Shown in pieces: positions 5,307 through 64,000 of a DNA stretch of 64,000 bases. This DNA comes from Dicyema japonicum. Its lineage: Eukaryota > Animalia > Dicyemida. Each line of letters starts with the position of its first letter. The first letter of the stretch is position 1. The notes beneath the pieces were generated by a model. That model was not told the DNA's origin. It made no database searches and worked only from the letters and a program-made list of their open reading frames with translations. The stretch spans positions 100,965 to 164,964 of the forward strand of contig RDEW01000063.1 of NCBI GenBank assembly GCA_011109175.1. The letters are read 5' to 3'. The position numbers and the translations under genes were made by a program.

Positions 5307-5308
5307 CT

Positions 5309-5713: not shown

Positions 5714-5715
5714 AA

Positions 5716-6735: not shown

Positions 6736-6812
6736 CGTCAAATTTCGTGTATTATGAAATTCTTTCAAAATAATTATGAAATGCTGAGTTGATCTTTTAA
6801 AATAAGTGAGAN

Positions 6813-7348: not shown

Positions 7349-8234
7349 GAGGTAAATATTAAATTTTCATAATAATAAAAAAATATAAAAGTACTGAATT
7401 TTTACTTTATTTTTTGATGGTGTCTAAGAATAGTGAAATTCTAAGCAATTTGTCTATTAACTGATAAGTAGATTTCTTTCTAAACCTCATGAAGACTTGA
7501 AATTTTTTGGTGTGATATTCCTGATAATGCAAGGGAAAAAAATGTATTCTAGACTGATTTTAGTACATATGAGCATTCACAAATGCTTAAACAGCTTAAA
7601 CTTGGAAATCCCACGGATTTTAAATAACTAAACGAATTATTCCAAATCACTCAACAACAGAAAAAACTGGTTAGAGGTTTCGAGAAAACGCAATCAATTG
7701 ATTTTGACGTCATTGTCATTTTAAGCTACCAGATTGTCTGTTACTAAGTTTATCTCAACAAAAGCAAAGCAAATGGTGAGGTCTCTCTTCTAATTACCTC
7801 CCACAAACATAGTGATCCCGCGATTCTGTTAAATCAACGGAAAAGTTTTCAATTTTTTCTAATAGCAGATCGAACGTCAATTTCTTTAAAGAAGAACTTT
7901 AGACTAGGTTGAAAAATGGTAGTCAACAATAGAATTCAACAGAAAGGTTGCTTGTCTTGTGATCGAAGTCTGAGTAACTTTGCTACCCTTTGAGCACGTC
8001 TCCAAACCGAGAGAAAGGGTTAATATAACTAACAGCCAATCGTGATTGAAAGCATTATCCATTTTATTGGATTATGAATACAATAGATGTGCCAAAGTGT
8101 GTTACAAAAACATGACCTCCCTCACGATAAAAATCCCTTTTTTCTATTTGAATTTTACTAGTTTCTTCATTATTATTATTAATAGCACTTTCAAAGAACC
8201 AAAAATGTAGTTTAATTATTTAAAGTTCCGCTTG

Positions 8235-12344: not shown

Positions 12345-12447
12345 ATAGCCCCGCAGGCGCAGCAAAAGAAACAAGGTTAGATGTCATCCTTTTCCATGCT
12401 CCCCTGTTCCTAGCCAAGGCTCTCATGTTGTCCAGGTCGTCGGCATT
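12345..12447 (-). mobile_element. RTE LINE, extreme 3' fragment
   Basis: ADDLDNMRALARNRGAWKRM matches the RTE C-terminus. Confidence 0.7.
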
Positions 12448-14639
12448 TATTAGACTTTTTTTAATTCAATACGATACTGGACAGAATATTCTCACTTTCA
12501 TTACAGTGAACAATTATAACTACATACTTCTATCATAAAGTCATTAAAACCATTCCGTAACGACTAGCCACACTCCCTTAACGTGTCGTTTGAATAGAGA
12601 AATTGCAGGTTTGAGTACCCATAATTTTGTAGAGTAACATATTTTATTAATATTTTGACTTCACACTATTTGCTTTAAGTAATAAGTGGATCATGTATTT
12701 AACTATTGTTTTACCTATATATTTTACATTACGGAATCATGAAACCTCCTGGTTCTGCACAGAACCACATATACCTGTCGGATTTTGGGAGAGTCCGCTC
12801 TTGGCTGTAACGTTTTTGTTAGCCTAGTTGTCAGCTGATGTCTATACAGAAATTGAAAAACCATTTATCAGAACAAGTTGTCTAGATGATTCTGCAATGT
12901 TTCCATTGCACTCTTTGTGATAAAAGTGGAAGAGGGCGAACCTACTTCTCCAACTCTCTTCGGTATCGGTAGTTTATAATAGATTATTTGAGTTGCATTA
13001 GGTCGGCACAAGCTGATGTTCTCCCTGGGGTTCCTTCCTTTATAAAAAATGAATAAAATAAAATTATTACAAAGATCAAAGGTAAAACCAAACTAATTAT
13101 TTTTTTATCCTGACGCGATCTACCAGAACACTGACCAAAAAAGGTAATCCAGAGGACGTTATCTAGGCGTTGAGATAGATCACAAAACTCTCTTCAGTGA
13201 TTTTTTAAGAGCTTCTTCAGTTTTGTAAGTTTGGCTTTAATATGGGTAATCTAATTGCTCTTCTTTCGGGTACGTTGTAAGATAATAATCATATACACCA
13301 GCTGTCAAGAATAAACAATATCAATGATATTGTTATATTTGTTGGTGGAGACGACATTATTGATTCCGACCTTAGAACATTCTTTCTTGAAGTTGCTACA
13401 GTACTTAGTTTTCAGACAATCGCTATGGATTAACTTCACCTGACGAATTTGGAGGTATATCTCACTAATAGCATCTCTGTATATGATTTTCCGATTTTGT
13501 ACGTATTTCCAAGTTTCCCGATCCATTTGAGAGGTAGGACACTTTGGTTTAGATTTCACAAAACTCTTTAGGTTTGTACGGACTTCAACGTATGAAATTT
13601 ATTATTGAAGGCTTTCGTTATTAGAGGTTTGCTCCTAGTGGTAGTCTTCAAATCTAGCATGAAGTACTAGAGAAACTTCAGATACCAAATCAACTTTGTC
13701 CTCCCTATTCACCTGGTCGATAATCACCTGCAGAGATATGATATTTACCCAACTTTCCGGTTGAGAAATTCGAATGGGCAGTCTTGTACCCATTCTTGTA
13801 CTACGAAGAGTTGTCGGACCACATCAGATGCGTTCTTATTGTTTTGTATATCCGGTTCATTCGCAGGTAGGTAGTGTTCACTTTATTTGTAAAAAAAGAC
13901 TTTTTCATCACAACAAGAAATTATTAACGAGATCCTTATGTTTAATTTTAAAGAATAGATCATTTTGTAATATTCCCAAAGTGATATAAACAACTAAGAT
14001 GATCTCGTGATTTTTGTCATTTTATCTTAAGATTTAAAAAAACATGTAAAGTCTTTACTTAAGAGGTTGGGATAGCGAATTCGTTTCCACGATTTGTTTG
14101 AATATGGGTCACCATAGATCACAGAATCGTTTTAATTAATTTTATTTTTAAGTTTTTTTAATTCTTAAAAAATTTAATTAATGTTTTTATTTTATTACAA
14201 TTTATATATTTGATCTTGTGGGCTAATAAGTAATGTAATGAAAATCTTATAACGATTCCTCAGCCAAAAGGTTAATCAAATGTTAAGTAAGCCGTTTAAA
14301 TGATTGTTTAGTATACAGGTTTTCCATTTCTTCTTCATCAGATCAACAATTTCAAACGGACTTGATCGATGTCATAAATTTGAGTACTTCAAAGAAAGAT
14401 TAAAATTGAACTTTAACTGAAGTTGATATTTACATTGAATATGCGATTTATAGAAATGACAAATAAATCTGGAGTAAATAGTTAGAGTTATAAAAATAAA
14501 ATTTACATGCATTTTCCGAAATCTGCTATCAAGTCGGATTTTGCCAATTTTTATATTGTTTTTGCTTAGGGAATTATATTATTATAGGCACGTACGCAAT
14601 GCCAAGATCATGACAAAGCATGTGCAACACGAAAAGTTA

Positions 14640-14900
14640 ACAATCTAATTAACGTCGCCCATCTTTTTCGTTCCGTTGCCATGTTCCGTAGCATATCTAG
14701 ATCGTCCCATCTTTAAGGCACTTTCCAATCTTCCTAGATCTTCATCTAGAATAACCGGCAGTGTTGTCCTCGGTCTGTCGCGGAAACGAAAAGCTTATAA
14801 GACAAAATACTCCTCCATTGCTATGTTGGTAGGGTCCCCATATCGTGGCGGAGTATGTTTCCAAAGAGCCTCTATCTTGATAAGGAATTATAGACAGATT
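14640..14900 (-). mobile_element. Old RTE 3' fragment inside the duplicated cassette (also 54640-54900 on + and 63250-63500 on -)
   Basis: RLFGNILRH...NIAMEEYF...RPRTTLPVILDEDLG motif in frameshifted translation. Confidence 0.7.
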
Positions 14901-15406
14901 TAATAAAACTCTGACGAAAAATCTGTCTAAATTGATGACAGAAAATGGTACTAAAAATTGAAAACAATTTTCAACTAAGATAACTTTTATTAACAACACA
15001 ACACCGAATGCTTTCACCCAATGAAACGGCATTCAGAATATAAGAGGCACTTCAGGGATAATACAGTAATTTTTCCAACAATTACAAAGTTGTTATTTTA
15101 TGTGTGGAAATACTTTTGGCAGTAAAATACCGAAAGATGACACATTTGTGAATACATTCTTCTAAAAGTCCACGATTGTAGATATCTGTTTTGGAATATT
15201 CCAATTGAATGAACAGCTGCACATTATCAAAAGCGACTCCAAATCCACTTGATCGGGATATTTTAGGAGCATCTTCATAATTTCGAAAACATCAAGGATT
15301 TTTGGTATTCTTTTGTTATAATTGACAAAATTAAAAATTTTGTAAGATTTTAGAATATCGACTGTATTTCAAATAATTATATAAATTCAAATAAATTGAA
15401 GACCGT

Positions 15407-16618
15407 TTAACGAATTAATATTAGTAGTACAAAGCTTAATGGAATGCTTTCTTGTATTTCAGTATGTGATTTCGGTTTGAGATAAATAGCGACAATGACA
15501 CACGTGATATTAGTCCAATAACTCCGAACACGATTCCAATTATTTGATTTTTCGTCAGTTTTTTTATGGCTTTTATTTCAATCGTTAATTGTTCTTCAAA
15601 GCATCCTTCATCTAAAATTCAAACAAATTCAGTAACCGTCTCCAATAAATTGAAAACTCAAATCATTGCGGAAAAATTGTATTTTAAGAGATGAAATTTC
15701 GATAGTCACATTTTTATAGCTTTGTGAGATGAATCCACATTGATAATATCCTCCCAATTTAATTATTTTAAAATTTTTTTCCAGTGAAACGCATTTATTT
15801 CTGTTAATACCAACACAAACAGAAAATCTATAAATACGATATTTATTCCAGATTGTTTAAATGCCGCAATAGTTATAGTAGTATGACTACTTTTCAATGT
15901 ATATTCATAGTTAATATATTTATAGTCAGTATATTTACTTTTTATCATATTATACTCATAATCACTGAAATGCTCATCTGTTTTCTAAGAATTTATGCAA
16001 ACGTGTACAATTTTGTTATTGTCAATATATGATATTTTGATAAGTCCGTTTATTACTGCTCTGATTTTCTTTTGGTTAAATAAAAACCAAATCGGCGTAT
16101 TTGGGTCGTTATTTGGGTTACAGTCATTAGCTAAATAAATTTTAATAAAAACCTTTTCCAGTAAAATAGTATAATCTACCATTAAACTGATATTGCAACT
16201 TGTTTGAATAAATGTAAGAGATAATTATTCGAAAAATAATATGAGTATAACCACATCGGTAGTATCCCCATATTAGTGTTGGATCTTTGTGATATTAGTA
16301 TAACGTTACCAGCTTAAGTACATCAAAAAAACGTACCATAAACAACTTCTTTACTAAGTCAATAGTATAAAACTCATTGTAGAAGTATGGAATAAGTTTA
16401 AATTTTATGAGAAAAAAACAAATCGTACCATTAGTTTCCATACATCTATATGTTTCTCGGAAAGTAAATTGATAAACTATATTCCTAAAGTTAACGAAAT
16501 ATATACTAGAAGGATTATAAATGACATATGAATCAATTAATATATATCTCTCATCACATTTTATTTTGACTATTTTGCTAAACAGTATAATTATGATATA
16601 ATGAATAGTTCTGTTCAT
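15407..16618 (-). pseudogene. Type I membrane protein family, copy A
   Basis: Same exon structure as copy B. GT-AG introns at 16485-16506 (22 nt), 16313-16336 (24), 15985-16008 (24), 15612-15636 (25). N-terminal hydrophobic leader and C-terminal TM (IIGIVFGVIGLI). Several frameshifts. Confidence 0.75.
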
Positions 16619-16750
16619 GTAATCTAAATTTTATTAGGTCAAATTTTGTTTTATTTAAATTTGTATTTTAATTGTTAGATTTAATTATAATTTATATTTC
16701 TATATTTCATTACCATTTTTATTAAATATCTTTAATTATAGAAAATATAG

Positions 16751-17867
16751 TGAGTAGTCCAACTAAGTGAGCGTATCCTAATGCGAATGCACGACACCCT
16801 GATAGCTGGGTCAAGTGTGTCTCCTAGGAAGTACGCCATAATAACGACCGAGAAAACACAGGCAACCCACCTAGGCACTATCAGACTTTTTTTGTCTGCT
16901 AAGTATGGTGTTTATGATGGTGGGCTAGTAATATGAAGGCGTTGATCGAATTACAATGTAATAATTTGATGGAAAAGATCAACTTAAAAACCCTTCATAT
17001 GGTCCTTTTCAGAGCATTGGACAATCCACATGTCGACCTTAATAGGTCGACAATATGCTAAACGGTGACAACTCACCTCGATCGGAGGCGCTGTACACGT
17101 ATTTGCAAGACCGCAATATTTTTTGGGGTCAATCAACAACTACATGTCCCCACTGTAAGTCAAGGAGTATGTCGGTTGATAATTTAGCCATTCGATGTAG
17201 ATCCATGCTCTGCCACGACGGTGTATGGAGCATAACGAGGTAGTAAGGAGTCTTCATCTTCTACTATGCAATAAGTATGGTATTAGCCACACCAGAAAGT
17301 TGCGGACTCATAAGGTGCAATCTGTAGTAGAGAACACCTGGGTCCAAATTAAAGTAGACAGTGTTATCCGTACCTCAGTGATAGTCACCACAATAAACCG
17401 GACATTGTGGTACGCGATAAAGAGTCTGGCCAAGTCCTTATCATAGAGGTAGACATCACGTCTCAAGACCGTTTTCAGACTTTGGAGGTGGAGAAAAAAA
17501 GGAAGTATGACTTTCTTGCAAACAAGATGGGGCAGATTCTTGGTTGCAAGGTCCTCGTTATTCCTATAGTAATAACGTGGGAAGGAATTGCAACAAAGTA
17601 CCACAAGGGTTATCTGAAGCAGTTGGGGGTAGATATGAAGCTCCAGGCCTATCTACTGTCCACTGTGTTATTGCGGATCTTAGAAAACCTGACACTGGAG
17701 ATTAGGAGGCAGAGCCCTGAGATGCCATATGGGCAGAGGGTTCAATTGGACAAGGCGCTTTCGGTGTTGTTTCAGCAACCGGAATCAAACCTGCCTGAGG
17801 AGGCTGGCGAGGAAGGTTGTTGATTATTAAATATATTAACTTTTTTTATTGTATGTTAAATAAAGTG
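16751..17867 (+). mobile_element. R2-superfamily (R4/NeSL-like) LINE, 5'-truncated insertion with target-site duplication
   Basis: CPHCK...VDNLAIRC zinc-knuckle relic, RHNEVV, KPDIVVRDK..IIEV.IT...EVEKKRKYD. Flanked by AGAAAATATAG at 16740-16750 and 17868-17878. Confidence 0.9.
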
Positions 17868-19468: not shown

Positions 19469-19849
19469 TGGAAAAACAAGGCATCATACTCTTATGTATT
19501 AGATGCTGACCACTACATCTAAATTCAAAGATAACTCTAATGAGATATCTCAAAAAAATACTTTCCGAGGTAGTGAAGCTGACAAAGTCTTGAGAGATGA
19601 AGATCACTTGTGTTTATTGTCTTAGTAGCTTTCTTATTGTCTTAGTGTAACAGATTATCCAGGCGTGTCTTAGTAGCTTACTCGTCATTCCCAGTGTTTT
19701 TTTGATCTGACGCACTTTCTGTACGTTTGTGCTGCATGTAGATCAATAGAATATGTCATTCAAGATTCCTTCCAATAAGGAACCTCAGGTTTTAACAAGA
19801 CTATCTTAGACACTTCTTGAATCAGACAACCTAGTCGCGTACAGGTAAA

Positions 19850-20215
19850 GATTCTTCAGTTACCTCTTGATAAATCCAATCCAAATACAATGCAGACACA
19901 TCCTCATCAAAGTAATCCGAAGACTCGTTTGGGACGTACTACTGGATAGCCCTCCTCTTATTGTGGATGACTGGGAGACTAGCATCGACAGAAAAACGAG
20001 ATTACATAGCACAATTACAGTCTGGAAAATTCCTTCTAAAAGACAAATTAAGCTCTTGGCATCTTCCACCGGACCAGTTATCATTGATTCTTCAAGAAGT
20101 ATTCTCCTGTCCGGAACCTCCGGTGAACATCAGAGACATGATGAAACGTCCAGCATTAGCTGCTGAACGCCTGAGGACAGTTGGGTTTTTCAAGGTAGCG
20201 AGGTCGAGGTTAATT
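19850..20215 (+). mobile_element. I/Jockey-like LINE, 3' fragment
   Basis: AQLQSG...VFSCPEPPVNIRDMMKRP resembles the QLRSG...LFxCP...DLWxxP C-terminus of I/Jockey-type RT proteins. Homologous to 52330-52708. Confidence 0.55.
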
Positions 20216-24500: not shown

Positions 24501-24789
24501 AAATTTTTTACTTTGAAGTTTCCATCATCAATTTAGTTTTCATGATGCATGACGAAAAATTTTGATAACATAGATTAGTTCTGGTGTCTGTTTTACTGGT
24601 CATATTATCAATCTAGCTACGGGTCTCTTTGCTTGCCCTGACCACCATGGCTCAATGTGAAAGTAATGGATTTTTGGGACCGTTCTGTCTTATTGCCTCG
24701 AATAACAGACAGCACCTACTTAGTCGTAAGACTATTTTTAAATGAAACAATATTTATTTATCATTAATTAATATTTGATTAATATATAA

Positions 24790-25130
24790 TTGTTGGCTGC
24801 AAGGTCTTCGTTATTCCAATAGTATTGACATATGAAGGAATTCCCACAAAGTACCACTAGGGTTATCTAAAGCAGTTGGCGGTAGTTAGTAAGCTCCAGA
24901 CCTATCTACTGTATATTGTATTAAAGAAACCCTAAAGAGCCTGACAGTGAGTATAGGAGGCATAGACGGAGATGCCATATGGGCAGAGGATTGGACAAGG
25001 CGCTCTCGGATTTGTTTCAGGAACCAGAATCAAACCTGCTTGCGGAGGCTGGCGAACAGGCAGGCGAGGAAGGTTGTTGATTATTATATCTTAACTTTTT
25101 ATTGTTGGTTAAATAAAGTGGGGGTAAATT
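24790..25130 (+). mobile_element. R2-superfamily (R4/NeSL-like) LINE, 3' fragment
   Basis: Nucleotide similarity to 17545-17868 including the 3' UTR ...gttaaataaagtg. Confidence 0.75.
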
Positions 25131-30289: not shown

Positions 30290-32545
30290 TTGTGGCCTAA
30301 GTAAGGTGACGTCATGTGACTCGCCATTTTCAATATTTTACCAAATCCAGTTTAAAAATAAAATCTTCTTTCTCACGTCCAACTGTTCTTTTTCTGTGGG
30401 TACCCTAAATGTAAGAGGACTCAATCCAACATATAAGAAGCTTCAGCTGTCACGTGATTTGGATCACTATAAAGTATCAGTATGCTGCCTACAGGAAACA
30501 AAAATAGACATGCGGGTGGGAAATTATCATTTGATTAGCCTTCCAACAACGTGTCGTCACTATGGTCTTGGATTTGCTATTCATCACACATTGTATAGTC
30601 GTATATCTTGGATGTGGGTTGTTACAGACAGGATTGCGGTACTGCAAATCTGGTAGGGAAGCAAACCAAACTCTACAGTGACAATCATCAACTTATACGT
30701 CTCGACTGGAATCAGGGAATCTGCCAATCCAGAAGAACTAGACAAACCCAATGAGACACAAGACGACGTGGACTGGAACTAAGAAGGATTTGCAAGGAAA
30801 TTACATGAAAATATATAATCAAATTGACTACATACTATGCAGACGAGGTCACAAACATCTCCTCGTAGACTCCAGGTCATTTGGAGGATTAGAGACAAAT
30901 AGTGATCATAAAATTGTGGTTACTTGCATTGGACTATACAAAGTCCATAACCAAATGAAAACACCTTCCAATAAAAAGCAGGAGCAATATGATATCCAAT
31001 TATTACATGACAAGTCAACTCAACAGAAATATGCGTATCAACTAAATCTTGAACTTAATGATATCGACGAAACTAAACCTGTTCATATTATTTGGGACAA
31101 AGTCGATAAAAGGTACAGCATGTGATGTGTTGGGAAGTATTACAAAAGCCCGTAAATTTTACAATCATGATATTTGCGTCCTATCAGAAAACCAGAAAGC
31201 CTTGAGATTGAAGATAGAAAACTCAAGGTCTCCAGAAAAGGCCAAGGAACTTCGGCAACAACGAAACCGAACATTATTAAAAATCAAGCAAACTCAGAAA
31301 TTCCTAACAGCAAAAGAAATAGAAAAACAAATTGAAGACATTGAAAAATATAAAGATGGAGTGAAAATGTTCAAAGCTATTCAATTAATTAATAAGAAAA
31401 AGAGGGCAAGCTCCATAATAATCAATGACATCCTTGGCAGAATAATTATAGATGAAAAGGACAAAGCAGCTACTATATCTGCTTATTACTATCATATGCT
31501 CAACTGGGACAACGAAATAGGCTATAAATTTGGTGCACAAGTCAAGCATGGTTTGGACATCCCAATAAACAAACAAGAAACACTGAATGCAATTAAAAAA
31601 TTGAAAAATGACAGATCGGCAGGACCAGATAATATCCCAGCCGAACATATAAAATATGCCCCAGTGAAGTTGGTAACAATCATTACCAATATACTCAACA
31701 AAATTTTTAAAGAAAACACTACGTTAGACATTGGCAAGGGTTGGTTAATTCCACTGCAAAAACAGGGAAAACCCAAAGGGCTCCTTTCCAACCTAAGACC
31801 AATCATCCTACTAACTACGCTGCATAAAATCTTGTAATTACATTGGAAAGAATCAAAGACAAGGTAGAGTATTTTCTGTCACCAGGACAAAGTGGTTTCC
31901 GGTCAGGCAGATCCACTGCCGATGTCATTTGGACACACAGATGGTCAAGTGCTCTATGCCAAAAATATAAAAAGTGCATAGATGTTCTCGGAATAGACAT
32001 GTCCAGAGCGTTTGCATAGATGTTCTCGAAAATTCTTAACTATCTGGCGTTCTAAGAAGAGCATAACTACGAATTCAAAGCTAAAATTGTATAAAAAATT
32101 CGTGACATACAACATGGAGGATTACGAAACGGGAAATGGACAATCTTGATCAATTTCATAGAAATCAACTAAGAAACATCTTGAGAATACATTTCCCGAA
32201 AAAGATATCAAATTAAGAACTGTACAAAAGATGTGGCTTAAGGCCATTATCAGAGGAGATTCACAAGGCTAGGTGGAGACTTTTTGGTCACATCTTACGA
32301 ATGGATATGTTGACTCCACCAAACATTGCAATGGAGAACTATTTCGCACAACTGAAGGGATCATTCCGTGGCAGGCCTAGAGTGACGTTGCCTTCAATAG
32401 TAAATGATGACCTAATCAGAATAAACAAAACTCGACGAAATGGTAAAGATCTTGACTCACTACGAGCAATGGCCCGGAACAGGGGAACATGGAAGAGGAT
32501 GTGTGGGAGGATATTTGACGTGGCACAAGGGGAACTTAATTAGTC
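30290..32545 (+). mobile_element. RTE-clade LINE with internal deletions
   Basis: GTLNVRGL, CLQETK, NQIDYIL, SDHKIV, AGPDNIPAE, NLRPIILL, QSGFRSGRSTAD, GIDMSRAF, then a jump to the C-terminus RWRLFGHILR / FRGRPRVTLP. The YADD core is absent. Confidence 0.92.
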
Positions 32546-36855: not shown

Positions 36856-37667
36856 CAGATGCTCAAAAAAGACATTATTAAGATTGGTTGAAAATAGAAA
36901 ATCTCGATGCTATTTCTAATGACTCTAAAAGCTACAATTTCTCAGTCAAAATTACAGTATTCTCAAAATATTATTATTTCAAGTTGTACTAGAATGACGT
37001 TTTGTGAGTGAAATAAGGACTGTTCGAGATTTTCAGACAAATCAATTCTTCTTGCATTGTGTCGTTACTTAATGGAATATTGCTTAGTAATTCAGTAGAT
37101 TTCCTACCAGAATATTTTTATTAACAATTTGCGCGGAAAGTACAGATCTCTCAGTAATCATGATTACCTATATAAATTAAAATAAAGAAAATCCGGTAGT
37201 GTCCATGATTTCTGCAACTTTTTTTTCCTGAAGAGTTTCATCATTTGTCGGTATTAGTCGAGTTATTTTCGTAGTTTTTCTTTTGGCTTCAGAAAATTTT
37301 AATATCTTTTCCTACTGAGGATACTTGCGTTTTGGGTGTTTTAATAAGCGAGATGGCTTTATTGTACCTTCATAGACCCAAGCTAAATTAAGTGGATCCT
37401 TTGGATTTTGAGTGAAACCATACGATAAATATTTCTTCTTCGACATTCAATTTGAAGTAATGTTCATTATGCAAATTATCCTTGGCTATCAACTTGTATT
37501 CCGTCATTGCTCCAACAAGTAATCTTCTAGTGAAACTGCTTCTATTTGGAGTTATGTTCATTTTCCAATGTATCATGGGATTATGCCAACTTGAATCTGG
37601 TCATTTCTCAAGTTCTCTTCAAATTAACTGTTTTGTTGCTTTGAGGAACATTATTAATGGCACTTTA
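36856..37667 (-). mobile_element. hAT (Buster-like) transposase fragment, copy 2
   Basis: MSKKKYLSYGFTQNPKDP...IKPSRLLKHPKRKYP and LSNIPLSNDT. Duplicate of 268-1072. Confidence 0.65.
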
Positions 37668-46000: not shown

Positions 46001-46156
46001 TTGTCAGCAGATCCAGCATCTTTAAATAATTCAGTAAAAAGAATTTCAAGCTCTTTTTGGATTTTGACATTTTGTGGGCTCCAGCATATCTTTTTTAGTG
46101 AAAGACGAATGAATATAATGTTTTATTAAATTTTTATGATAATAAGTTGTAAGATT

Positions 46157-46238
46157 GCCAACATGGCCGAGCGGTCTAAGGCGGCAGCTTTAGGTGCTGT
46201 TATCTTCGGATGCGTGGGTTCGAATCCCACTGTTGGTA
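46157..46238 (+). tRNA. tRNA-Leu (anticodon UAG)
   Basis: Acceptor stem GCCAACA/TGTTGGT, D-arm GGCCGAGCGGTCTAAGGC, anticodon loop TTTAGGT, long variable arm, T-arm GGTTCGAATCC. No encoded CCA. Followed by a T5 run (Pol III terminator). Confidence 0.95.
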
Positions 46239-47419
46239 TTTTTCTAATTTTTATTATATATTTTTTTAAAAATGTAATTTTATAGTAGATTTTTTTATAT
46301 AGTTATTTTTTAAAACCACCTTAGTTTTTGGGTGTTATGATGAGAATAATGTAGCAAACTCAAAAGAAATTTTTTTGAAATAAAATAAGCGCAGTTTCTT
46401 CTTTGATACAAACAATTCACTCTTCCAGTCTATTTTGAACTACTTACCAACGTTAAATTTGCCGATTAAACAATGCGACCAAACAGCATTATTTGTCGCT
46501 TTAGTGTTTCGAAATCCTTTTCCCAGAAATGAGTATTTTCTGTATATCTATTCTTGTAAGATTAAATTACTTGCTGATTTAAAAAGATTCTTCGACTCCT
46601 ACAGAATCTGCAGAAATCAGAGATATAAATAATTTGATAGTCAGACCGACAGATAAACCTTTACTAGTTCCTCAGCTAAATCAATAGGAGAGGTTTCTAA
46701 TTCAAACCAACACCGACGTGCTTGTATGGTTACTGAAAGATCTTTTGATCAGTGGTTGTATTAATGTCCTCGCTATTGTTGGTACCCATCTATGACGATA
46801 CTCTCTGCATCAGACAAAAACTTTAGCTTGATATGACATGTGACGTCGATTGATATGGATATCATGGCCTTATGTTAAAGAACCTCAGAAAGATTCCCAC
46901 GACAAGGCAATAAACGGAACCTAGAAACGTGCTCTGTAGTGTGCTAGATTCCCCTCTAAACTGAACCGCTCGGCCTAGACAGATAAGGAGAAGCCATTGG
47001 TTAGCTTTGTTCTTCCACATAGTCCCAGTAGTCACGTTGTATGCCACCGTTAAAGCCGAGTAGGCTTAGGGAGAATTACGATGACATCTTGACCTGACTG
47101 GTACACGTTCTGTGATCCACTTTACCTAGGTGACGACAATGTCTTGATGGTATTCATAAGAATCCATAGAATCCAGTACGAGGGAGGAGCATCGGGAAAG
47201 AATGAGGATTTTGGCGGAGCGCATCGGGATCACGTGATAGTTAGTTTTGGTTTTACCGTAATCTTGGGTGTTAAATAAATAAATAAATATCTTCATTCTA
47301 CCGAGAGACTATTCCGCTCCGTGGCGACGAGTTTTGGCTTAGACCTCACTTCCATGACAAATTGCTTTTAATCACTTCGCTGGATAAGGGTTCTACTGGT
47401 ACGTATTGGTATCACGCGA

Positions 47420-50350: not shown

Positions 50351-52329
50351 GATTAACAGGATTAACACGATTTCGCTCAGAGGATTCTTTCTGTAGTGTT
50401 AAGTGGATACACTTATGAAGTTAGGTTGGTTTTGTTGTCTATCTTAGTTTTCCAGAAGTCATTAAACCATTAAATAGGTTTAAAAATGGGACTTAGAAAA
50501 AAATAAGATACATTTTATATGGACGTCATTAATATAAATAACATTTTGATGCTGTCCACTTATATGCCGACTGCATGATGTGACGTGACACAAAATATTA
50601 CAAAATTTAATAATTCTCTAATAACTATCCAATAATTCATTAATCTGCGAAACCATCATTTTGGGTTATCACAACTTCAGCATTGACCACAACATTATCA
50701 TACAACTACGAGCGACAACCGTATCCAACGAGGCGGGCTACAATGGACGACCTTCCCAGTTGGACTTGATGACATTATTTTCGGTGCGGGATCAGTTGGA
50801 AACTTTCTTCCTTTCCATTAACCCAGTGATCTAATGATTCAACAACATCACCGACAATGTCTGATCCATGTCCCTCAATCTACGCGTCCACATCATTTTG
50901 GGTTGTCTTGGAGTCAATCTTCAAGCAATTACTTCGATTTATCCCCAACACTCCTTAAGTGAGCTGTTGCTTCAGTAGTGTCCTTCTATCAAATCTGGTC
51001 TTCAAAAAATTTCTGATAGCTTTCAAATCCGAAACAAAAAACAGCTGGATGGTATTCGAAAATATTGGTAGTCATGACAGCTACAACTTTTTCATCCACG
51101 TGATAAAGGAAGTTTACTCATCATTCGTCATCTACTCCCATTCATGGATGATTCGAATTCCATCACATGTTTACGGTCGAAATAGTAATCATCTCAATCA
51201 ATTGATTTCAGTGTGCACATGTCGAACTGAGCCAAATTCATTAAAACGAGTTTTTAAACAAAACTTCAGAATCTCTTTTTCTCATGGTTTAGAATTCTGC
51301 TACAATCTGACTAAATTTTACACTGGATTCACTTTAGAACCAAAAAGTATAGATTTACCGAGATCCCCAAGTCATTCGATTTCTTTACATTTGAGGCTCG
51401 TTTTTTTGCCTGCTTGTAGTTTGGAAATTCAAATCTGAAGAATTTTGCGATCTCCTCCTACAAGAGATTATAGTGATGACATTTATAGTTTTAATCTCGT
51501 CAGAAGGAAGCGCATTTTTCTCTGATGAATATCTCAAAGACTAAGTAAAACTGCAGGTAGTCTTCATGTTTCTATCATAATCTAATCTATACGGATTTTA
51601 TCCACCATATCCCTTGTTGTTATGGCAAAGTGGTATCCTGAAATTTTCGTTCTTCTCCCATAGGATTAAGTTTGCAGGGTTATCGATATTTCAATTCTGT
51701 TCAAGGATATTGTAAGTATGTTAGCATTCCATTAACTTTATTAGTAAAATTTCTGAATTATTAGAAATTTCTAATACAAGCAGCGTTCATCTCAAAACCT
51801 ATGTGAGTATCATAGTTTCCACACACAGTTTCTACGTGGAGTTCAAATAAATCATTGCATTTGTTCCATTGTTGCTCATTGATTTTTTACTTTATGAAAT
51901 TATTTTTATCTCTTCTTTTTTCGGGCATCTGAAATTTCTATAAGTTTGCCAAAATTTTGAGATATCGCTCCTCAATGTTTTGGAATCCAAGTCGGATCTT
52001 CACATTCTGTAACTTACTAACTAGCATTTACTTTCCTGTATATTTTTATACTCACCTACCCGAATTTTGAAATTTTGTTAAAATAAAATCCAAGGATGTG
52101 AATAATTTGTACACACTTTCTTAATTGTTTCAAAATATTGACTTCATCCACGTTATCTCTATAATTGTGTAACTGTTATGTTCGATTATGAGCTTATCAA
52201 ATATTTCATCCCCTATGACAACACTCTCAAGAGTTTTCTTCAATATGGCTTATTCAATCAAAGTTCTCATTATTTTTTAATTTGTCTATTCGATCTCTGA
52301 AAATCCGATTACGTGAACTGGGTAAAATT

Positions 52330-52708
52330 CTTCAGTCTCCACCTGATAAAACCAAGTTAAAGATAATACATGACCACATCTCCACCAAAGCCAATCCAAG
52401 ATTGTTTTGGAACGATCTGTTGGATGGCTCTCCCCCATTGATAAATGACTCGGAGGATACCCTTACAGAGAAACAAGGAGGACCCTTACACAACTACGTT
52501 CTTGACACTTTCTACTCAGAGCCGAGTTGGGTTCTTGGTTTCCACGTCCGGAGAAATTATAATTAATTCACAAGAAGCTTTCCCCTTAAAGGGACCTCAG
52601 GTGAACATCAAAGACCTATAGAAGCGTTCAACACTAGCTTCTGAACTCCTGAGTTTGACTGGCCTGCTACAAGGGAGGGAGGTCAGAGTTAATAATACTA
52701 ATTAACAT
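52330..52708 (+). mobile_element. I/Jockey-like LINE, 3' fragment
   Basis: ETRRTLTQLRS motif. Homologous to 19850-20215 and to the 3' end of 25177-25441. Confidence 0.55.
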
Positions 52709-52775: not shown

Positions 52776-55700
52776 TATAATTAAAGATATTTAATAAAAA
52801 AGGTAATGAAATATTTTTATCATAGAAATATAAATTATAATTAACTCGAACTATTAAAATACAAATTTAAATAAAATAAAATTTGACCTAATAAAATTTA
52901 GATTACATGAACAGAACTATTCATTATATCATAATTATACTGTTTAGCAAAATACTCAAAATAAAATGTGATGAGAGATATATATTAATTGATTTATATG
53001 TCATTTATAAGAATCCTTCTAGAGTAAATATTTCATTTACTTTAGGAATTTAGATTATCAAATTTACAATCCAATGAACATATAGATGTATGGGAAACTA
53101 ATGGTACCGATTTGTTATCTTTCTCAAACATAAAATTTAAACTTATTCCATACTTCTACAATGATTTTTATACTATTGACTTAATTATAGAAGTTGTTTA
53201 TGGTACGTTTTTTTGATGTACTTAAGATGGTAAACGTTATACTGAAATCACAAAGATACCACAAACTAATTATGGGGATTACTACCGATGTGGTTATCAT
53301 ATTATTTTTTCAAATAATTTATTCGTTAAAATTTATTCAAACAAGTTGCAATATCACGATAATGGTTTGTATATTTACTGGAAAAGGTTTTAATTAAGAT
53401 TTATTTAGCTAACGACTGTAACCCAAAAAATGACCCAAATACGCCGATTTGGTTTTTATATCACAAAAACAATCCGATCACTAATAAGTGGAATTATCCA
53501 AATATCATATATTGACAATAACAAAATTGTACACGTTTGCATTAATTCTTAGATAACAGATGAGCATTTCAGAGATAATGATTATAATATGATAACAAGT
53601 AAAGCTATTGACTATAAATATATTGACTATGAATATATATTGAAAAGTAATCATACTACTATTACTATTGCGGCATTTAAACAATCTGAGAATAAATATC
53701 GTATTTATAGATTTTCTGTTTGTGTTGGGATTAAAAAAAATAAATGCGTTTCACTGGAAAAGAATTTTAAAATAATTAAATTGGGAAGATATTATCAATA
53801 TGGATTCATCTCACAAAGCTATAAAAATGTGACTATCGAAATTTCATCTCTTAAAATACAATTTTTCCGCATGATTTGAGTTTTCAATTTATTGGAGACG
53901 GTTACTGAATTTGGTTGAATTTTAGATGAAGGATGCTTTGAAGGACAAATATCGATGGAAATAAAGGCCGTAAAAAAACTAACGAAAAATCAAATAATTG
54001 GAATCGTGTGTGGAGTTGTTGGACTAGTATCCATATGTGTTATTGTCGCTATTTATATCAAACCGAAATCACATATTGATATTCAGGAAAGCATTCCATT
54101 AAGCTTTGTAACTAACTAATATTAATTAGTTAAACGGTCTTCAATTTATTTGAATTTATATAATTATTTGAAATACAGTCGATATTCTAAAATCTCACAA
54201 AATTTTTAATTTTGTCAATGATAACGAAAGAATAGACAAAAATCACTGATGTTTTCGAAATTATGACTAAGATGCTCCTAAAATATCCACGATTAAGTGG
54301 ATTCGGAGTCACTTTTGATAATGTGCAGCAGTTCATTTAATTGGAATATTCCAAAACAGAAATCTACAATCGTGGACTTTCTGAAGAAAGTATTCACATT
54401 TGTGTCATCTATCGAGAATTTACTGCCGAAAGTATTTCCACCCATAAATTAACAACTTTGTAATTGTTGGAATTACTTATTTATCTTTGAAGTGCCTCTC
54501 TTTTTTTGAATGGCGTTTCATCGGTTGAAGCATTCGTTGTTGCGTTGTAAAAAAGTTATCTTACTTAAAAATTGTTTTCAATTCTTAGTAGCATTTTCTG
54601 TCATCAATTTAGATAGATTTTTCGTCAGAGTTTTATTAAATCTTTCTATAATTCTTTTTCAAGATGGAAGCTCTTTAGACACATACGCCGCCACAATATG
54701 GGGATTCTGCCAACATAGCAATGGAAGAGTATTTTGTCTTAGAAGCTTCTCATTTCCGCGACCGGTCGAGGACAACATTGCCGGTTATTCTAGATGAACA
54801 TCTAGGAAGATTGGAAAGTGCCTTAAAGATGGGGACAATCTAGATATGCTACGGAACATGGCAACGGAATGAAAAAGATGGGCGACGTTAATTAGATTGT
54901 TAACTTTTCGTGTTGCACATGCTTTGTCATGATCTTGGCAACGCGTACGTGCCTATAATAATATAATTCCTACGCAAAAACAATATAAAAATTGGCAAAA
55001 TCCGACTTGATAGCAGATTTCGGAAAATGCATGTAAATTTTATTTTTATAACTCTAACTATTTACTGCAGATTTATTTGTCATTTCTATATAAATCGCAT
55101 ATTCAATGTAAATATCAACTACAGTTAAAATCCAATTTTAATCTTTCTTTGAAGTACTCAAATTTATGACATCGATCAAGTCCTTTTGAAATTGTTGATC
55201 TGATGAAAAAGAAATGGAAAACCTGTATAATAAACAATCATTAAAACGGCTTAATTAACATTTGATTAACCTGTTGGATGAGGAATCGTTATAAGATTTT
55301 CATTACATTACTTATTAGCCCACAAGATCAAGTATATAAATTGTAATAAAATAAAAACATTATTTAAATTTTTTAAGAATTAAAAAAACTTAAAAGTAAA
55401 ATTAATTAAAACATTCTGTGATCTATGGTGACCCATATTCAAACAAATCGTGGGGACGAATTCGCACTCCCAACCTCTTAAAAAAAGACTTTACTTGATT
55501 TTTTTTTTTAAATTTTAAGATGAAATGACAACAATCACGAGATCATCTTAGTTGTTTATAACAATCTGGGAATAATATAAAGTGATCTATTCTGTAAAAT
55601 TATACAAAAGGATCTCGTTAATAATTAGTTGTTGTGATGAAAAGCTTTTTTTTACAAATAAAGTGAACACTACTTACCTGAGAATGAACCGGATAGACAA

Positions 55701-55890
55701 AACAATAAGAACGCATCTGATGTGGTCCGACAACTCTTCGTAGTACAAGAATGGGTACAAGACTGCCCATTCTAATTTCTCAACCGGAAAGTTGGGTAAA
55801 TATCATATCTCTGCTGGTGATTATCGACCAGGTGAATAGAGAGGACAAAGTTGAGTGGGTATCGGAAGTTTCCCTACTATTTCATTCTAT
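52776..55890 (+). repeat. Inverted copy of the 13665-16741 cassette; left arm of an inverted repeat with 62268-64000+
   Basis: Reverse-complement alignment. 54125-55890 pairs with 62268-64000 inside the window. Confidence 0.9.
52907..54119 (+). CDS. Type I membrane protein family, copy B (about 358 aa if two frameshifts are corrected)
   Basis: GT-AG introns 53024-53045 (22 nt), 53203-53226 (24), 53365-53408 (44), 53529-53552 (24), 53901-53925 (25). Leader MNRTIHYIIIILFSKILKIKC, TM IIGIVCGVVGLVSICVIVAIYI, short tail to TAA. Frameshifts near 53460 and 53870. Confidence 0.7.
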
Positions 55891-57320: not shown

Positions 57321-57594
57321 TTTTATACTTTTCAGATGAAATATATTTTAGTTATTGTGGAGAGTGAAAAATAATTCGCACGTGCACTGATAGATTTCCG
57401 ATTGCAGGATTTATATTCTGGTTGGATTATGAATACAATAGATGTGCCAAAGTGTGTTACAAAAACATGACCCTCCCTCACGATAAAATCCCTTTTTTCT
57501 ATTTGAATTTTACTAGTTTCTTCATTATTATTATTATTAGCACTTTCAAAGACAAAAAAATGTAATTTATTTAATTAAGGTTCCGCATTTGCCG

Positions 57595-60160
57595 TATTTA
57601 TCTTCAGGTTATTCTTTCTCCCACAATTCTCTTAACTAACTTCCTCCATGCTCCACGGTTACTGGCAATTATTCTGAAAGTATCCAGATCATCTTCTGTT
57701 TTCAGCTTTCGTCCTACATTGGTCACGTCTTTGTGTAGAACCTCTGGCAAAGTTATGCGAAATCTTCCACGGAACGAGTTATTCACTTCTTGGCAGAAAT
57801 AGTTCCCCATTGCAGAATATTTTAGCAGGCGTCATCTGGCTCATTCGAAGGATGTGACCAAACAGACGCCATCTTGATTCAATGACATCCTGACTCAATG
57901 GTCTTGTATAACATACTTTGCATAGATTATTGATTGTAATTTTTTTGGCCAGTTGATGCCAAGCAACAGTCGAAGTTGTTTACGATGGAAGGCATCAAGT
58001 TGTTCCATTACCGTTTTGAGACACCCCAGGTTGCAGAGTTGTACATTAGGACTGGTTTCACAAAGGCATTGTATAGTCTTACTCGTAATTGTGTGCTAAT
58101 TTGTTTACGATGATTCCACACTACTCCCATTTTCTAAAGGCCGCTAAGGCTAACATCTTCCTGTTAGTGATATTCTCAGCGTCTCAGAGCAAGACTCCAA
58201 TTTTTTGCAGTAACTTCATTTTTCATCATTTTGGGTTAATTGGTAGTTGTCTCCGTCTTTTCCGTATTGATTTTGATGAACCATTTTTCTCGGACATCGG
58301 GCATCTTTGTCCGTATATAGTTTAATGTTTTTTCGTCGCTGGATATATAGTCGATATCATCTGCATAAATCACTTCAATTTGAGGTAAATCGCCAATTTA
58401 TAGTCTGAAGTCTCTGAGTGCCGCCTCCAGATATGTCACAAAAATTACCGGTGACAAGGAATATCTCTGCGGTACCCCGAACGTAGTCTCGAATGGGACA
58501 GACTCCAAATTTCCAAAACGTAGACTTAGCTGCGCTGTTCCAAATAATAGACGGATCATTCTGACACTTTCCTCGACAACTCACTTCTCCAAGATATCCA
58601 AAAGTCTCCCTCTGTGAATAAAATCAAATGCTTTGGACATTTCCAAGCCAAGAATGTCAGAGCCCACTTGTACTTTTGATGTTTTGCACAAAGCCATCGA
58701 TGTCCTCAGACCACATCAGCTGTAGATTTCCCTGACCTGAATCCGCCTTGACAGTGAGAGAGAAAGTTCGATGTCAGTTCCAATCCAGTTCAGCACTATA
58801 AGTGATAGTGTCTTGCGTAGAGTTGTCAATAGTACGATGGGTCTTAAATTCGTTAAGGGGCCTTTAGCTTTGCCCAGTTTTTGTGATGCAATTAGTGTGC
58901 CATTACCCACATACAGTGGTGAGTTGTATTTGAATGTTTTGTTTATTTTCCTTTATTTCCCTCGTTCTTTTCTCTATTTTATACAGGGTTGCGCATGACT
59001 CTTAGAGTGTGTTCCTTTGCCTGGTCCTGACATGTTTCTACCGGTAAACGTAGGTTCCTCTGCAATTTAGATAGTTCTTCAGGCACGTGGTCATAGTGTC
59101 CACTAAATACTTCGGTTTTAATCCAACTGCTGAATGGGCCGTGGACTTTATTTCATCGATGATGTCTCGCCACAGCTCCCCAGGCATTTTTTCTTTATTC
59201 CACTGTCTGATCTTTTCTCTCAATGTATTTTGATAGCTATCCCGAGTCGGTCCCACCATGCAGAGTTGCTCTACTGCGAACCTCCTCTCAGATATCCTCA
59301 TGCCAGCCGCTTTATAAACCCCAAAATATCGTTTGAAAAGGAAACGTGCTACAACCATTCTGTGATCACTGTCTACTAGTGTCCCATTGTAGCTCCGAGA
59401 ATCTGTTAGCAGTGCCTTGTATGCAGATATGTAATCTATTTGGTTATATATAGGCTTGATAGTTACAGATTTGTCCTTTCGGTAGCAGCTCCATGTCGTC
59501 TTATGTCTTCTGAGTGCCTGAAATCAGTATTGCATAGAAATAGTTTGAATGTATTGCAAAATTCGATAAGCGATTCTCCTGAATGGTTCCTGATCCCCTT
59601 CCATGGCTTCCCAAGAATTTTTCGTGACTCCACTCACGTTCTGCTTTTGCGTTCCAATCTCCGGCGATGTATGTCATGAACGATGTTTCCAAAGATGCAT
59701 GTAATTGCGACAGGGAGGAATGGAAGTCGTCTAGTTCGTCGCCATTGATTGATACTCTCACCGAAGTTGGTGCATATACATTAATAAAGGAGATTATGGA
59801 ATTGTTCCTTTCACTGTATTTTAATTGTAAAACACATATTCTATCCCTCACCCTCCACGTCTTGTGGATTCAATTGTTCAGTTCTTTTTGTATTGCAAAT
59901 CCCATGCCATAGTGTGGGCAATTCGAAGGGTGCAGAATCAGGCGGAAATCATTGTTGATTTCATCTAGTCCGCCTTTTACTTTCGTTTCCTGTAAGTACG
60001 CAACGGTTACCTTGTACGATCCAAAATCCACGCATGAATTTCTTCTTTTAGATTTGACTTTAATCCTCTTACATTGAACGAGCTAATGGTGAAAGATCAC
60101 GAAGAAAAGCACGAAAAAGACATGTGTGCAATAGAGCCACGTCACCAGCTCAACCAAAAA
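57595..60160 (-). mobile_element. RTE-clade LINE, duplicate of 8235-10050, retaining APE but lacking part of the linker
   Basis: DRICVLQL, FINVYAPT, YIAGDWNAK, NLRPIVLL, IYADD, RWRLFGHILR. Confidence 0.92.
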
Positions 60161-63100
60161 TTTCTTCATTAAAAACTTTCAAAAATAACTGATAAGACAA
60201 GAAAGTCGTCATACAAAGTTTAAATTTAAATTATTTTTAAATTAATTTAAATTTTATTTATTTAAATTTAAAGTAAGTCTATTCTTAGGTAATGTTACCG
60301 TCCGTCATGTGGTTCGCCTTGTCAGGTGGCGTCAGATATAAGCCAAAAGTGTATCCAAAATGAACCATTTGTAAACGACCATACAGAGGAGTTCCCCCTT
60401 TTTGGTTCATAAAATTAAATTCATTAAAATTCTATTAATCGGAACGAAAGGCAAATAAACTAGAATCTACTGTCCACGACATTCACGATAATTTAGTCTA
60501 GCGATTTGCGGACATGAGGATGACAAACTCTTTCTCCGATGGTTAAAATCTGGTTGTTTTTTTATTGAATTTCAGTTATATTGATGGCGAAAGACTTGAG
60601 TTCAGAAGACTGCCACAAAATCATTTAATTTTCGACAAACAGTTCAAAAACCAAATTCTACCCTTGAAATACTCAACCCTGGTTTTGAGGTTACTCTCAG
60701 AGTAATAGTTAGTTCCTGACGGATTCATCCTACGATTGGCGGTCGGAAGATAAGGTAAGGGATTGGACTAAAGAGTTCCTTTTCCAAATTCTTCTCTTCA
60801 TGAGATTCAAAAAATAATGGACTTTTGACTGAGTTGAAGCTAAAATATTGTCAAAATTGATCTGATTGACAGGTCAATCTAAAAGGTCTCTGAATATTTC
60901 TCCTACTCTCTCGAAATGGTCTTTTTAAATGGTCTCTTTCATGCCTAACTTTGTTTTCATGTTTTAATATTTCATGACTTTATTTTGATGGAAAATTGTA
61001 AATTGGTTTACCTTCGTCTCCCTGATTCCGCTTCGAGTTATATTTGCCTGTTTGAACGAATCTTTCAACGCTCGGTCACTCACTGAGCTTCCTGAGATCT
61101 CTAGTCTCACGGTCCCCTCTTAATTGGAAGGATCCAAATATTTAATTGTGATTTCAAATTCTACTCGACTTTTCTCAATATGGTATATTTGGAAAATTAT
61201 TTTACATCCGGAGTTTTCGAGGTTGTAAATTGCACTTCTTATTGTGTCAGTAATACCCAATGGACAGATTATTTATAGGATCTAAGAAAAGAGGTGGATT
61301 GATGGTTCTGAATTGTTATAAAAATTAGATCACTTCGTCAATCATGTGGTTGGTCTCACTATTGATGTGCATGATTCTTAGTTTGTTTGATTTTTTAATG
61401 GTTTCATAATTTTTGGGTAGGGATACCCGACTATCGATTAAAATGTAGATTAATGCCTTGTTTAATGAAAATAAATTTAGATACTATTGGAGATCTGTAC
61501 ATTCAACGAAATCGACAGCAGATTCCCTAAAACCTTAAGAATACTGAAGATAATATCAGAAGAGGTCGAAGTCTTCTGCAATGTTTCCATTGCACTCTAT
61601 GTGATAAAAGTGGAAGAGGGCGAACCTACTTATCCACCTCTCTTCGGTATCGGTAGCTTATAATAGATTATTTGAGTTGCATTAGGTCGGCACAAGCTGA
61701 TGTTCTCCCTGGGGTTCTTTCCTTTATAAAAAATGAATAAAATTCAATTATTTCAAAAATCAAAGGTAAAACCAAACTAATTATTTTTTATCTTGACGCG
61801 CGCAATCTACCAGAACCTTTACCAAAGAAAGGTAGTCCAGTGGACGTTATCTCGACGTTGAGATAATTACAAAACTCTCTTCAGTGATTTTTTAAAGAGC
61901 TTCTTCAGTTTGGTAAGTTTGGCTTAATATGGGTAATCCAATTGCTTTTCTTCTCGCGGTACGATGTGAGATAAATCCTATACACCCGCTGTCAAGAATA
62001 AAAAATATCAATCATATTGTTAAATTTGTTGGTGGAGATGACATTATTGATTCCGACATTAGAACTTCTTCTTGAAGTTGGTACAGTACTTAGGTTTCAG
62101 ACAATGCGAGGGATTAACCTCACGTGACGAATTTTGAAATATATCTTACTAAATAACATCTCTGTATATGAAACTCTTTAGGTTTTGTTACGGACTTCAA
62201 CGTATGAAATTTATTATTGAAGGCTTTCGTTATTAGAAGCCCTGCACCTAGTGGTATCTTCCAAATCTAGCATGAAGTACTAGGGAAACTTCCGATACCA
62301 ACTCAACTTTGTTCTCCCTATTCACCTGGTCGATAATCACCAGCAGAGATATGATATTTACCCAACTTTCCGGTTGAGAAATTCGAATGGGCAGTCTTGT
62401 ACCCATTCTTGTACTACGAAGAGTTGTCGGACCAAATCAGATGCGTTCTTATTGTTTTATCTACCGGTTCATTCTCAGGTAGGTAGTGTTCACTTTATTT
62501 GTAAAAAAAGCTTTTCATCACAACAAGTAATTATTAACGAGATCCTCATGTATAATTTTACAGAATAGATCACTTATATTATTCCCAGATTGTTATAAAC
62601 AACTAAGATGATCTCGTGATTGTTGTCATTTCATCTTAAAATTTAAAAAAAATCAAGTAAAGTCTTTTTTAAGAGGTTGGGAGTGCGAATTCGTCCCCAC
62701 GATTTGTTTGAATATGGGTCACCATAAATCACAGAATTGTTTTAATTAATTTTATTTTAAGTTTTTTTAATTCTTAAAAAATTTAAATAATGTTTTTATT
62801 TTATTACAATTTATATATTGATCTTGTGGGCTAATAAGTAATGTAATGAAAATCTTATAACGATTCCTCAGCCAACAGGTTAATCAAATGTTAAGTAAGC
62901 TGTTTTAGTCACTGTTTAGTATACAGGTATTCTATTCCTTTTTCATCAGATCAACAATTTCAAACGGACTTGATCGATATCATAAATTTGAGTACTTCAA
63001 AGAAAGATTAAAATTGGATTTCAACTATTGTTGTTATTTACACTGAATATGCGATTTGTATAGAAATGACAAATAAATTTGCACTAAATAGATAGAGTTT

Positions 63101-64000
63101 TAAAAATAAAATTTACATGCATTTTCCGAAATCTGCTATCAAGTCGGATTTTTCCAATTTTTATATTGTTCTTGCGTAGGGAATTATATTATTATAAGCA
63201 TGTACGCGATGCCAAGATCATGACAAAGCATATGCAACACGAAAAGTCAACAATCTAATTAACGTCGCCCATTTTTTTCAATCCGTTGCCATGTTCCGTA
63301 GCATATCTAGATTGTCCCCATCTTTAAGGCACTTTCCAATCTTCCTAGATCTTCAGCAGTGTTGTCCTCGGCCGGTCGCGGAAACGAGAAGCTTATAAGA
63401 CAAAATACTCCTCCATTGCTATGTTGGTAGGGTCCCCATATCGTGGCGGAGTATGTGTCTAAAGAGCTTCCATCTTGAAAAATTATTATAGAAAGATTTA
63501 ATAAAACTCTGACAAGAAGATCTGTCTAAATTGATGACAGAAAATGGTACTAAAATTGAAAACAATTTTCAAGTAAGATAACTTTTACTTACAACGCAAC
63601 ACGAATGCTTCAACCAATGAAACGCCATTCAAAATATGAGAAGCACTTCAGTAATTCCAACAATTACAAAGTTGTTATTTTATGGGTGGAAATACTTTCG
63701 GCAGTAAATTCCGAAAGATGACACACTTGTGAATACATTCTTCTGAAAGTCCACGATTGTAGATTTCTGTTTTGGAATATTCCAATTGAATGAACAGCTG
63801 CACATTATCAAAAGCGACTCCGAATCCACTTGATCGGAGCTATTTTAGGAGCATCTTAGTCATAATTTCGAAAACATCAAGGATTGTTGGTATTCTTTCG
63901 TTATAATTGACAAAATTAAAAAATTTGTAAGATTTTAGAATATCGACTGTATTTCAAATAATTATATAAATTCAAATTAATTGAAGACCGTTTAACGAAT

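Follow-up and report, generated by a model that had tools for sequence, protein, structure and literature searches.

Lineage-specific multi-copy surface families of parasites include the Giardia VSPs, the Plasmodium RIFIN/STEVOR proteins and the schistosome micro-exon genes. Dicyemids attach to the renal epithelium of their hosts and feed through it, and to our knowledge next to nothing is known of dicyemid surface proteins. Among animals, introns of less than 30 bp have been found only in myxobolid cnidarians and in Dicyema japonicum (Hadjez et al. 2026, PMC13644364), and the D. japonicum splice signals are reduced to 'GTa' at the donor and 'AG' at the acceptor (PMC13644364). The D. japonicum genome has a GC content of 36.7% and 49% repeats, with numerous long interspersed nuclear elements (LINEs) (Lu et al. 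2019, PMC6736024), and its published assembly is a merger of an Illumina (Platanus) and a PacBio RS II (Falcon) assembly. Here we analysed a stretch of 64,000 nt from this assembly (GCA_011109175.1, contig RDEW01000063.1, positions 100,965 to 164,964; hereafter the window, to which all coordinates refer), with the focus on a locus at 52907-54119 (+) that an earlier note, made from the letters alone, had described as a member of a multi-copy family of type I membrane proteins hidden by tiny introns.

The locus, named copy A, has two further copies in the window (B and C) and the 3′ flank of a fourth (D) at its end, and the visible copies are probably decaying non-processed pseudogenes of a dicyemid-specific orphan gene for a type I single-pass membrane glycoprotein, carried by segmental duplication. 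The copies are as follows.

52907-54119 (+): copy A, a gene relic with six exons and five tiny introns, 358 codons with X at two breaks
15407-16618 (-): copy B, full-length and heavily decayed, with 14 exon gap events, one in-frame stop and all five GT..AG pairs kept
4808-5306 (+): copy C, in which the 5′ flank and codons 1-13 run in frame into the last part of exon 5, followed by intron 5 and a portion of exon 6
62268-64000 (-): copy D, present in the window by its 3′ flank only, an inverted copy of the A 3′ flank in the last 1.7 kb of the window

Disabling lesions were found in all three gene copies of the window, namely two frameshifts in A, the 14 exon gap events and the stop in B, and an internal deletion and a truncation in C, which is a stump ending inside the transmembrane helix at 5306; no intact copy was found within the 64 kb. 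Expansion of the family, as had been proposed, is thus not what the copies display, given that the visible ones are all disabled and that A and B diverge without coding constraint, and the family looks like a dying lineage-specific set. The earlier note had added that neutral ratios of nonsynonymous to synonymous substitution (dN/dS) together with read-confirmed frameshifts in all copies would make the family a dead one, and at the level of the assembled sequence this is the state observed, with a dN/dS of 1.04 and copies A-C disabled as assembled.

Exon-intron anatomy and the predicted protein

Five GT-AG introns of 22, 24, 44, 24 and 25 nt were recovered at the sizes given previously within 52907-54119 (+), and the parts of the unit, which includes flanks on both sides, are listed below.

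52776-52906 (+): 5′ flank, conserved and common to A, B and C, starting with the TATA-like TATAATTAAAG
52907 (+): start codon ATG of copy A
52907-53023 (+): exon 1, 39 codons, hydrophobic leader followed by K-I-K-C-D-E-R-Y
53024-53045 (+): intron 1, 22 nt, GTAAAT...TTTAG, with GT and AG preserved in B
53046-53202 (+): exon 2, carrying the NGT sequon
53203-53226 (+): intron 2, 24 nt, identical in B, a TGA and a TAA lying in frame
53227-53364 (+): exon 3, its 3′ end weakly like the end of exon 5
53365-53408 (+): intron 3, 44 nt (49 nt in B), the least certain of the five
53409-53528 (+): exon 4, broken in A
53463-53475 (+): break 1 in A, 2 nt fewer than B and adjoining an A run; B reads through
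53529-53552 (+): intron 4, 24 nt, with an in-frame TAG at its end
53553-53900 (+): exon 5, the longest, with the NHT and NVT sequons and a Cys pair, broken in A near the exon end
53869-53873 (+): break 2 in A, near 53871, 1 nt fewer than both B and C
53901-53925 (+): intron 5, 25 nt
53926-54119 (+): exon 6, juxtamembrane Cys, transmembrane helix, 19-aa tail and TAA stop
54117-54119 (+): stop codon TAA of copy A
54120-55889 (+): 3′ flank, moving with the gene, common to B (15415-13655) and D (64000-62268)

All introns but the third measure 22-25 nt, three of the five have a GTA donor, and the acceptors are plain AG, so that intron sizes and splice signals as predicted for copy A match those of the D. 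japonicum ultra-short-intron genes (PMC13644364, PMC6736024). A ciliate-type genetic code was also considered for the tiny introns and was dropped, since intron 2 has an in-frame TGA. The homology of A to B and C stops sharply at 52776, and no recognisable coding sequence was found in the 3′ flank (54120-55889).

Removal of the introns had been said to yield one open reading frame (ORF) of ~358 aa. The 358 codons are there, yet the introns alone do not suffice: when every GT-AG segment of 18-70 nt was considered in an exhaustive search, no path with five introns led through copy A, and the 358-codon reading requires that exon 4 be mended by 2 nt and exon 5 by 1 nt, the joined reading used here having an X at both breaks. 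The earlier note had named these two places only as frameshifts to check. The 1-nt loss in exon 5 occurred in A, because C covers the site and agrees with B. When A is threaded by introns only, a six-intron, uninterrupted ORF of 319 codons can be obtained; its introns are atypically long (34-53 nt), it departs from the model frames throughout exon 3 and in a portion of exon 4, and it leaves out sequence that C conserves, from the last part of exon 5 into the first part of exon 6, and it was not retained as the gene model.

The layout of the predicted protein agrees with the earlier description in its main elements. In the leader of exon 1, a basic residue precedes a small hydrophobic core with the sequence Y-I-I-I-I-L-F (highest Kyte-Doolittle mean over 9 residues, 2.73), and the leader is followed by an ectodomain of ~300 aa with five cysteines and three N-x-T sequons (NGT, NHT and NVT). 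One strong transmembrane helix is predicted in exon 6 (19-residue Kyte-Doolittle mean 2.96, all other segments being ≤1.3), and it is followed by K-P-K and then the 19-aa tail, the basic side being the predicted cytoplasmic side. From this order of segments, a type I topology and a former role at the membrane surface are suggested. The Tyr/Ile richness of the ectodomain had been put forward as well, and the richness was confirmed (I 15.9%, Y 8.2% and FYMINK 47.7% of the predicted protein); it is not a distinctive trait, since it is what an AT-rich sequence of ~30% GC gives.

Within the ectodomain, the end of exon 3 (53274-53354) and the end of exon 5 (53784-53864) are identical at 9 of 27 residues (E 0.018 in a single comparison), with the common pattern G-x-Y-Y-x-x-G ... 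K-[LI]-Q-[YF]. This weak likeness is no proof, and it may be the trace of an old internal domain duplication and of a two-domain ectodomain.

Divergence of the copies and the question of a living family

Copies A (52776-55889) and B could be aligned over 3.1 kb at 91% identity. The statement that intron positions are conserved while exons diverge did not hold, as there is no contrast between the compartments of the two copies:

exons, A versus B: 90.2% identity, 14 gap events in 1.07 kb
introns, A versus B: 90.6% identity, 1 gap event (intron 3)
flanks, A versus B: 93.3% identity, 14 gap events in 1.9 kb

The A/B exon mismatches are spread as 35, 29 and 38 over codon positions 1, 2 and 3, and the proportions of synonymous (pS, 0.094) and nonsynonymous (pN, 0.097) differences correspond to the dN/dS of 1.04 given above. 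In the transmembrane and tail exon, 7, 4 and 10 mismatches were counted at the three positions, and dN/dS is ~1 everywhere. Divergence at second codon positions, calculated without exon 2, parts of which are frame-shifted in B, and without exon 3, which aligned poorly, amounts to 6.3% and equals the rate of the 3′ flank. Over ~1.7 kb of this flank, A, B and D are related in a star-like manner; substitutions private to a single copy number 48, 60 and 40, respectively, and the corresponding gap events 5, 9 and 12. Extrapolated from the flank, neutral drift would leave ~3 indels and 1-2 nonsense changes in the exons of A, and two and none were seen; the lesion tally therefore matches the neutral expectation, and the near-intact look of A is no evidence of constraint. 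The status of copy A as a pseudogene is suggested by its two indels, as read in the assembly, together with this neutral pattern. For the variant-surface or host-interaction family that had been envisaged, no intact copy in the window and a dN/dS of ~1 throughout, the transmembrane and tail exon included, speak against it.

Copy B has an ORF of 107 codons from its ATG (16295-16618, -), which stays open only because intron 1 is read as coding and the reading slips into the ancestral frame and away from it; it re-enters the frame of exon 2 twice, as small deletions sum to multiples of three, probably by chance.

Four points weigh against regarding A as a neutrally decaying copy. The dN/dS confidence interval of ~0.65-1.75 is wide enough to accommodate moderate constraint on branch A alone, because B, clearly dead, makes up half of the path. 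Consensus errors could account for the small indels of A, one of which adjoins an A run, because the published assembly merges Illumina and PacBio RS II assemblies. As described above, six longer GT-AG introns would turn A into a 319-codon ORF without interruption. Finally, intact members may be present elsewhere in the genome or as copy D, the comparison covering the window.

These points bear on a rival explanation, namely that the family is alive, with A (and perhaps D) as a working gene, the frameshifts as assembly errors, and the whole as a fast-evolving lineage-specific set of surface glycoproteins, in which case a dN/dS of ~1 would arise from diversifying selection on the ectodomain mixed with the dead copy B. 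It is favoured by the absence of in-frame stops from A, which has two small indels only, one adjoining a homopolymer, by the 96% conservation of the 5′ flank with its TATA-like box among the copies, by an assembly method that permits indel errors and by the wide dN/dS interval. However, second codon positions diverge like the non-coding flank (~6.3% each), two independent errors would be required within 1.07 kb, the lesion count of A is that expected neutrally from the flank, and the region is rich in repeats and LINEs with the other two visible copies plainly dead, so we regard a living family as unlikely. That A, D or both are intact, the two indels of A being assembly errors, and represent living, very fast-evolving dicyemid-specific surface glycoproteins without relatives, hidden from annotation by ultra-short introns and used at the cephalopod kidney interface, is in our judgement distinctly unlikely.

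Probable coding past of the locus and the search for relatives

A signature of former coding was detected in the base composition by codon position. The modelled exons yielded a chi-square of 34.4, higher than at all 1758 random placements in the window and reached by only 0.7% of exon sets taken from stop-free ORFs simulated with the same dinucleotide make-up; the G excess at codon position 1 was 0.092 versus 0.022 ± 0.022 in the simulations and was reached in none of 1000. Threading gave a weaker result, since joining ORFs with six or seven small introns works at a few percent of random places, and ~15% of random 1.2-kb placements could be bridged by at most seven operations when introns of 18-60 nt and frameshifts were allowed; by itself, threading is weak evidence and discriminates the copy A locus from random places only moderately. 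The composition signal, the succession of start, leader, ectodomain, anchor, tail and stop, and the genome-typical introns together argue that the copy A locus is, or recently was, a real protein-coding gene, the excess over chance being moderate.

The searches for relatives were run exon by exon, and no credible relative was returned, consistent with the earlier failure to recognise any known family. In Pfam, each exon gave sub-threshold noise only (DUF7202 at E 0.05 and transmembrane-segment families), and no match was found in PHROGs; among PDB sequences, the only match was adenosine kinase at E 0.15, taken as noise. A word search with exon 5 against 5.8 billion proteins and scans of viral and metagenome contigs gave no match, and an ESM Atlas feature search gave no usable one. 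When exon 5 was used in a HMMER scan of 1.84 billion representatives, three proteins were returned, in which every matched stretch has ≤11 bits and the E-values are built from summing 4-9 repeats of a short motif. The repeat unit of proteins P0001 and P0002 (motif F-x-D-N-D-x-x-x-M-T-S-x-A-I) resembles ~30 residues at the start of exon 5; yet no single stretch exceeds 11 bits, the independent E-values being 5e4 or more at the library size, and the whole-protein E-values are inflated by 5-9 repeats. The three hits, and the likeness to P0001 and P0002, were treated as chance. An AlphaFold2 single-sequence model of exon 5 alone reached a predicted local confidence (pLDDT) of 34 and was unusable.

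These results also bear on whether the locus was ever a gene. As an alternative, chance open frames in an AT-rich repeat could have been bridged by small GT..AG segments, as would be conceivable from the ~15% of random placements that are threadable, from a chance expectation of one 106-codon ORF per ~128 kb at this composition, from the lack of relatives in any search made and from the poor exon 5 model. This is improbable to our mind, since the codon-position composition and the G excess at position 1 surpass those of stop-free simulated ORFs, since ATG, leader, ectodomain, strong transmembrane helix, basic residues, short tail and stop follow each other in a coherent order, since all but one of the five bridging segments fall within the 22-25 nt typical for the D. 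japonicum genome, and since B and C restore the frame exactly at the breaks of A.

A further alternative is that a mobile element carried the locus along, or that it encodes an envelope-like glycoprotein of viral descent, and that it spread by transposition rather than by segmental duplication. A signal peptide, a glycosylated ectodomain, a transmembrane helix and a short tail make up the layout of viral and retroelement envelope proteins, and this likeness of architecture is the first point in its favour; the unit has sharp ends, and LINE fragments are close by. In addition, CACGTG, which occurs 13 times in the whole window versus 5.4 expected (~2.4-fold), shows no enrichment in the unit, being counted 0 times in the 3.1-kb unit of copy A (52776-55889) and once in that of copy B (13655-16740). 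Against it stand the five spliceosomal introns of the gene, the position of B and D inside ~11-kb collinear blocks with an old LINE, a signature of segmental duplication, and the absence of matches in Pfam, PHROGs, PDB sequences and viral contigs, where no transposase, reverse transcriptase, envelope or capsid similarity of the exons was found and where the transposon-protein match named beforehand as a possible refutation likewise failed to appear. No terminal repeats of its own were seen in the unit, target-site duplications not having been searched for. We consider such an origin highly improbable.

Duplicated blocks, their surroundings and known systems

Segmental duplication as the origin of a multi-copy family, proposed previously, is borne out at the DNA level. 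All copies keep introns, and so the copies are segmental duplications at the DNA level, neither retrocopies nor an obvious mobile element; ~1.8 kb of 3′ flank is common to A, B and D, and intron 5 is present in C. The related copies had been reported at 15407-16618 (-), where B is indeed full-length, and at 4939-5306 (+), where the partial copy C was found to start at 4808. A fourth copy had been implied past 64000, and the 3′ flank of D does run to base 64000, so that its stop codon, and hence the copy itself, should be found ~6 nt beyond the window end, judging from the alignment. No divergent paralogues besides A, B and C were detected by tblastn of the exon peptides against the window.

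The copies are arranged in two collinear blocks ~50 kb apart, block X (4808-16740), which holds C (+) and then B (-), and block Y (52776 to past 64000), which holds A (+) and then D (-). Each block is ~11-12 kb in length, the two are 88-98% identical piecewise with convergent gene copies at the ends, and they have been rearranged internally, e.g. 5309-5713 matches 59256-59660 out of order. A decayed LINE lies at the centre of both, at 57400-59900 (-) and 8067-10550, in which ORF fragments recognised by eye are endonuclease-like (59501-59851), like the start of a reverse transcriptase (58716-58910) and like a C-terminal part (57604-57810); this LINE was already present before the blocks were duplicated. 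A giant element with 3-kb inverted ends was considered and rejected, the block centres being an old LINE and B and D lying within collinear duplicated blocks. Single N bases occur at 222, 6812 and 9832, and two of these coincide exactly with the borders of segments repeated in block X, suggesting that the assembly was joined inside the duplicated region.

The copies sit amid decayed LINE fragments and repeats. The window is eukaryotic, with a GC content of ~35%, repeat-rich and with several LINE reverse-transcriptase and endonuclease fragments, and its GC content and LINE abundance fit the published D. japonicum genome (PMC6736024). Other elements noted in the window, apart from the gene copies or near them, are the following.

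1924-2755 (+): further LINE pieces, with RVT_1 at 1924-2388 (E 2e-18)
30306-31837 (+): further LINE pieces, with a sub-threshold Exo_endo_phos match at 30306-30656, then a 262-codon ORF without Pfam match
46156-46239 (+): tRNA-Leu (anticodon TAG), the sole one in the window, ARAGORN and Rfam agreeing
4424-4662, 6980-7218, 17494-17732 and 24789-24923: a short dispersed repeat family near gene copies, 84-98% identity
364-1023 and 36958-37616: a repeat pair of ~660 nt, 94-98% identical, 36.6 kb apart
52321-52653: an old repeat of ~330 nt directly upstream of copy A, 70% identical to 19844-20175

Under the explanation that we favour, a decaying set of non-processed pseudogenes, the ancestral gene would have had six exons and five ultra-short introns and would have encoded a protein of ~358 aa. 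Its hydrophobic N-terminal leader would have led it into the secretory pathway, exposing an all-beta-looking ectodomain of ~300 aa with its cysteines and sequons, while a single C-terminal transmembrane helix would have served as the anchor and left the 19-aa tail in the cytoplasm, i.e. in type I topology. Together with ~1.8 kb of its 3′ flank, the gene would then have been duplicated at the DNA level, introns included, inside the LINE-rich segmental duplications represented by blocks X and Y, after which the visible copies would have drifted without coding constraint and gained frameshifts, a stop and a large deletion.

The locus documents a dicyemid-specific gene for a putative single-pass membrane protein without detectable relatives, and it carries a caution as well, in that in genomes with ultra-short introns a plausible multi-exon orphan gene can be built from short ORFs, and comparison of paralogues can expose such a gene as a drifting relic. 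An intact and expressed member, should the genome hold one at another site, would be a candidate for a surface molecule of the parasite.

Compared with the ultra-short-intron genes of D. japonicum (PMC6736024, PMC13644364), the locus is alike in its introns of 22-25 nt, its GTa donor and its plain AG acceptor, and it differs in having one intron of 44 nt and in that its splicing is predicted from sequence. With the VSPs, RIFIN/STEVOR proteins and micro-exon genes it shares the orphan and multi-copy state, a putative signal peptide with a predicted membrane anchor and occurrence in a parasite, whereas no sequence similarity to them is seen and the copies here are decaying. From typical non-processed pseudogenes in segmental duplications it is set apart by the lack of an intact copy in the window and by a state of A that hangs on two indels; what it has in common with them is that introns and flanks were copied along, that frameshifts, a stop and deletions have accumulated, that substitutions are spread evenly over codon positions and that dN/dS is ~1.

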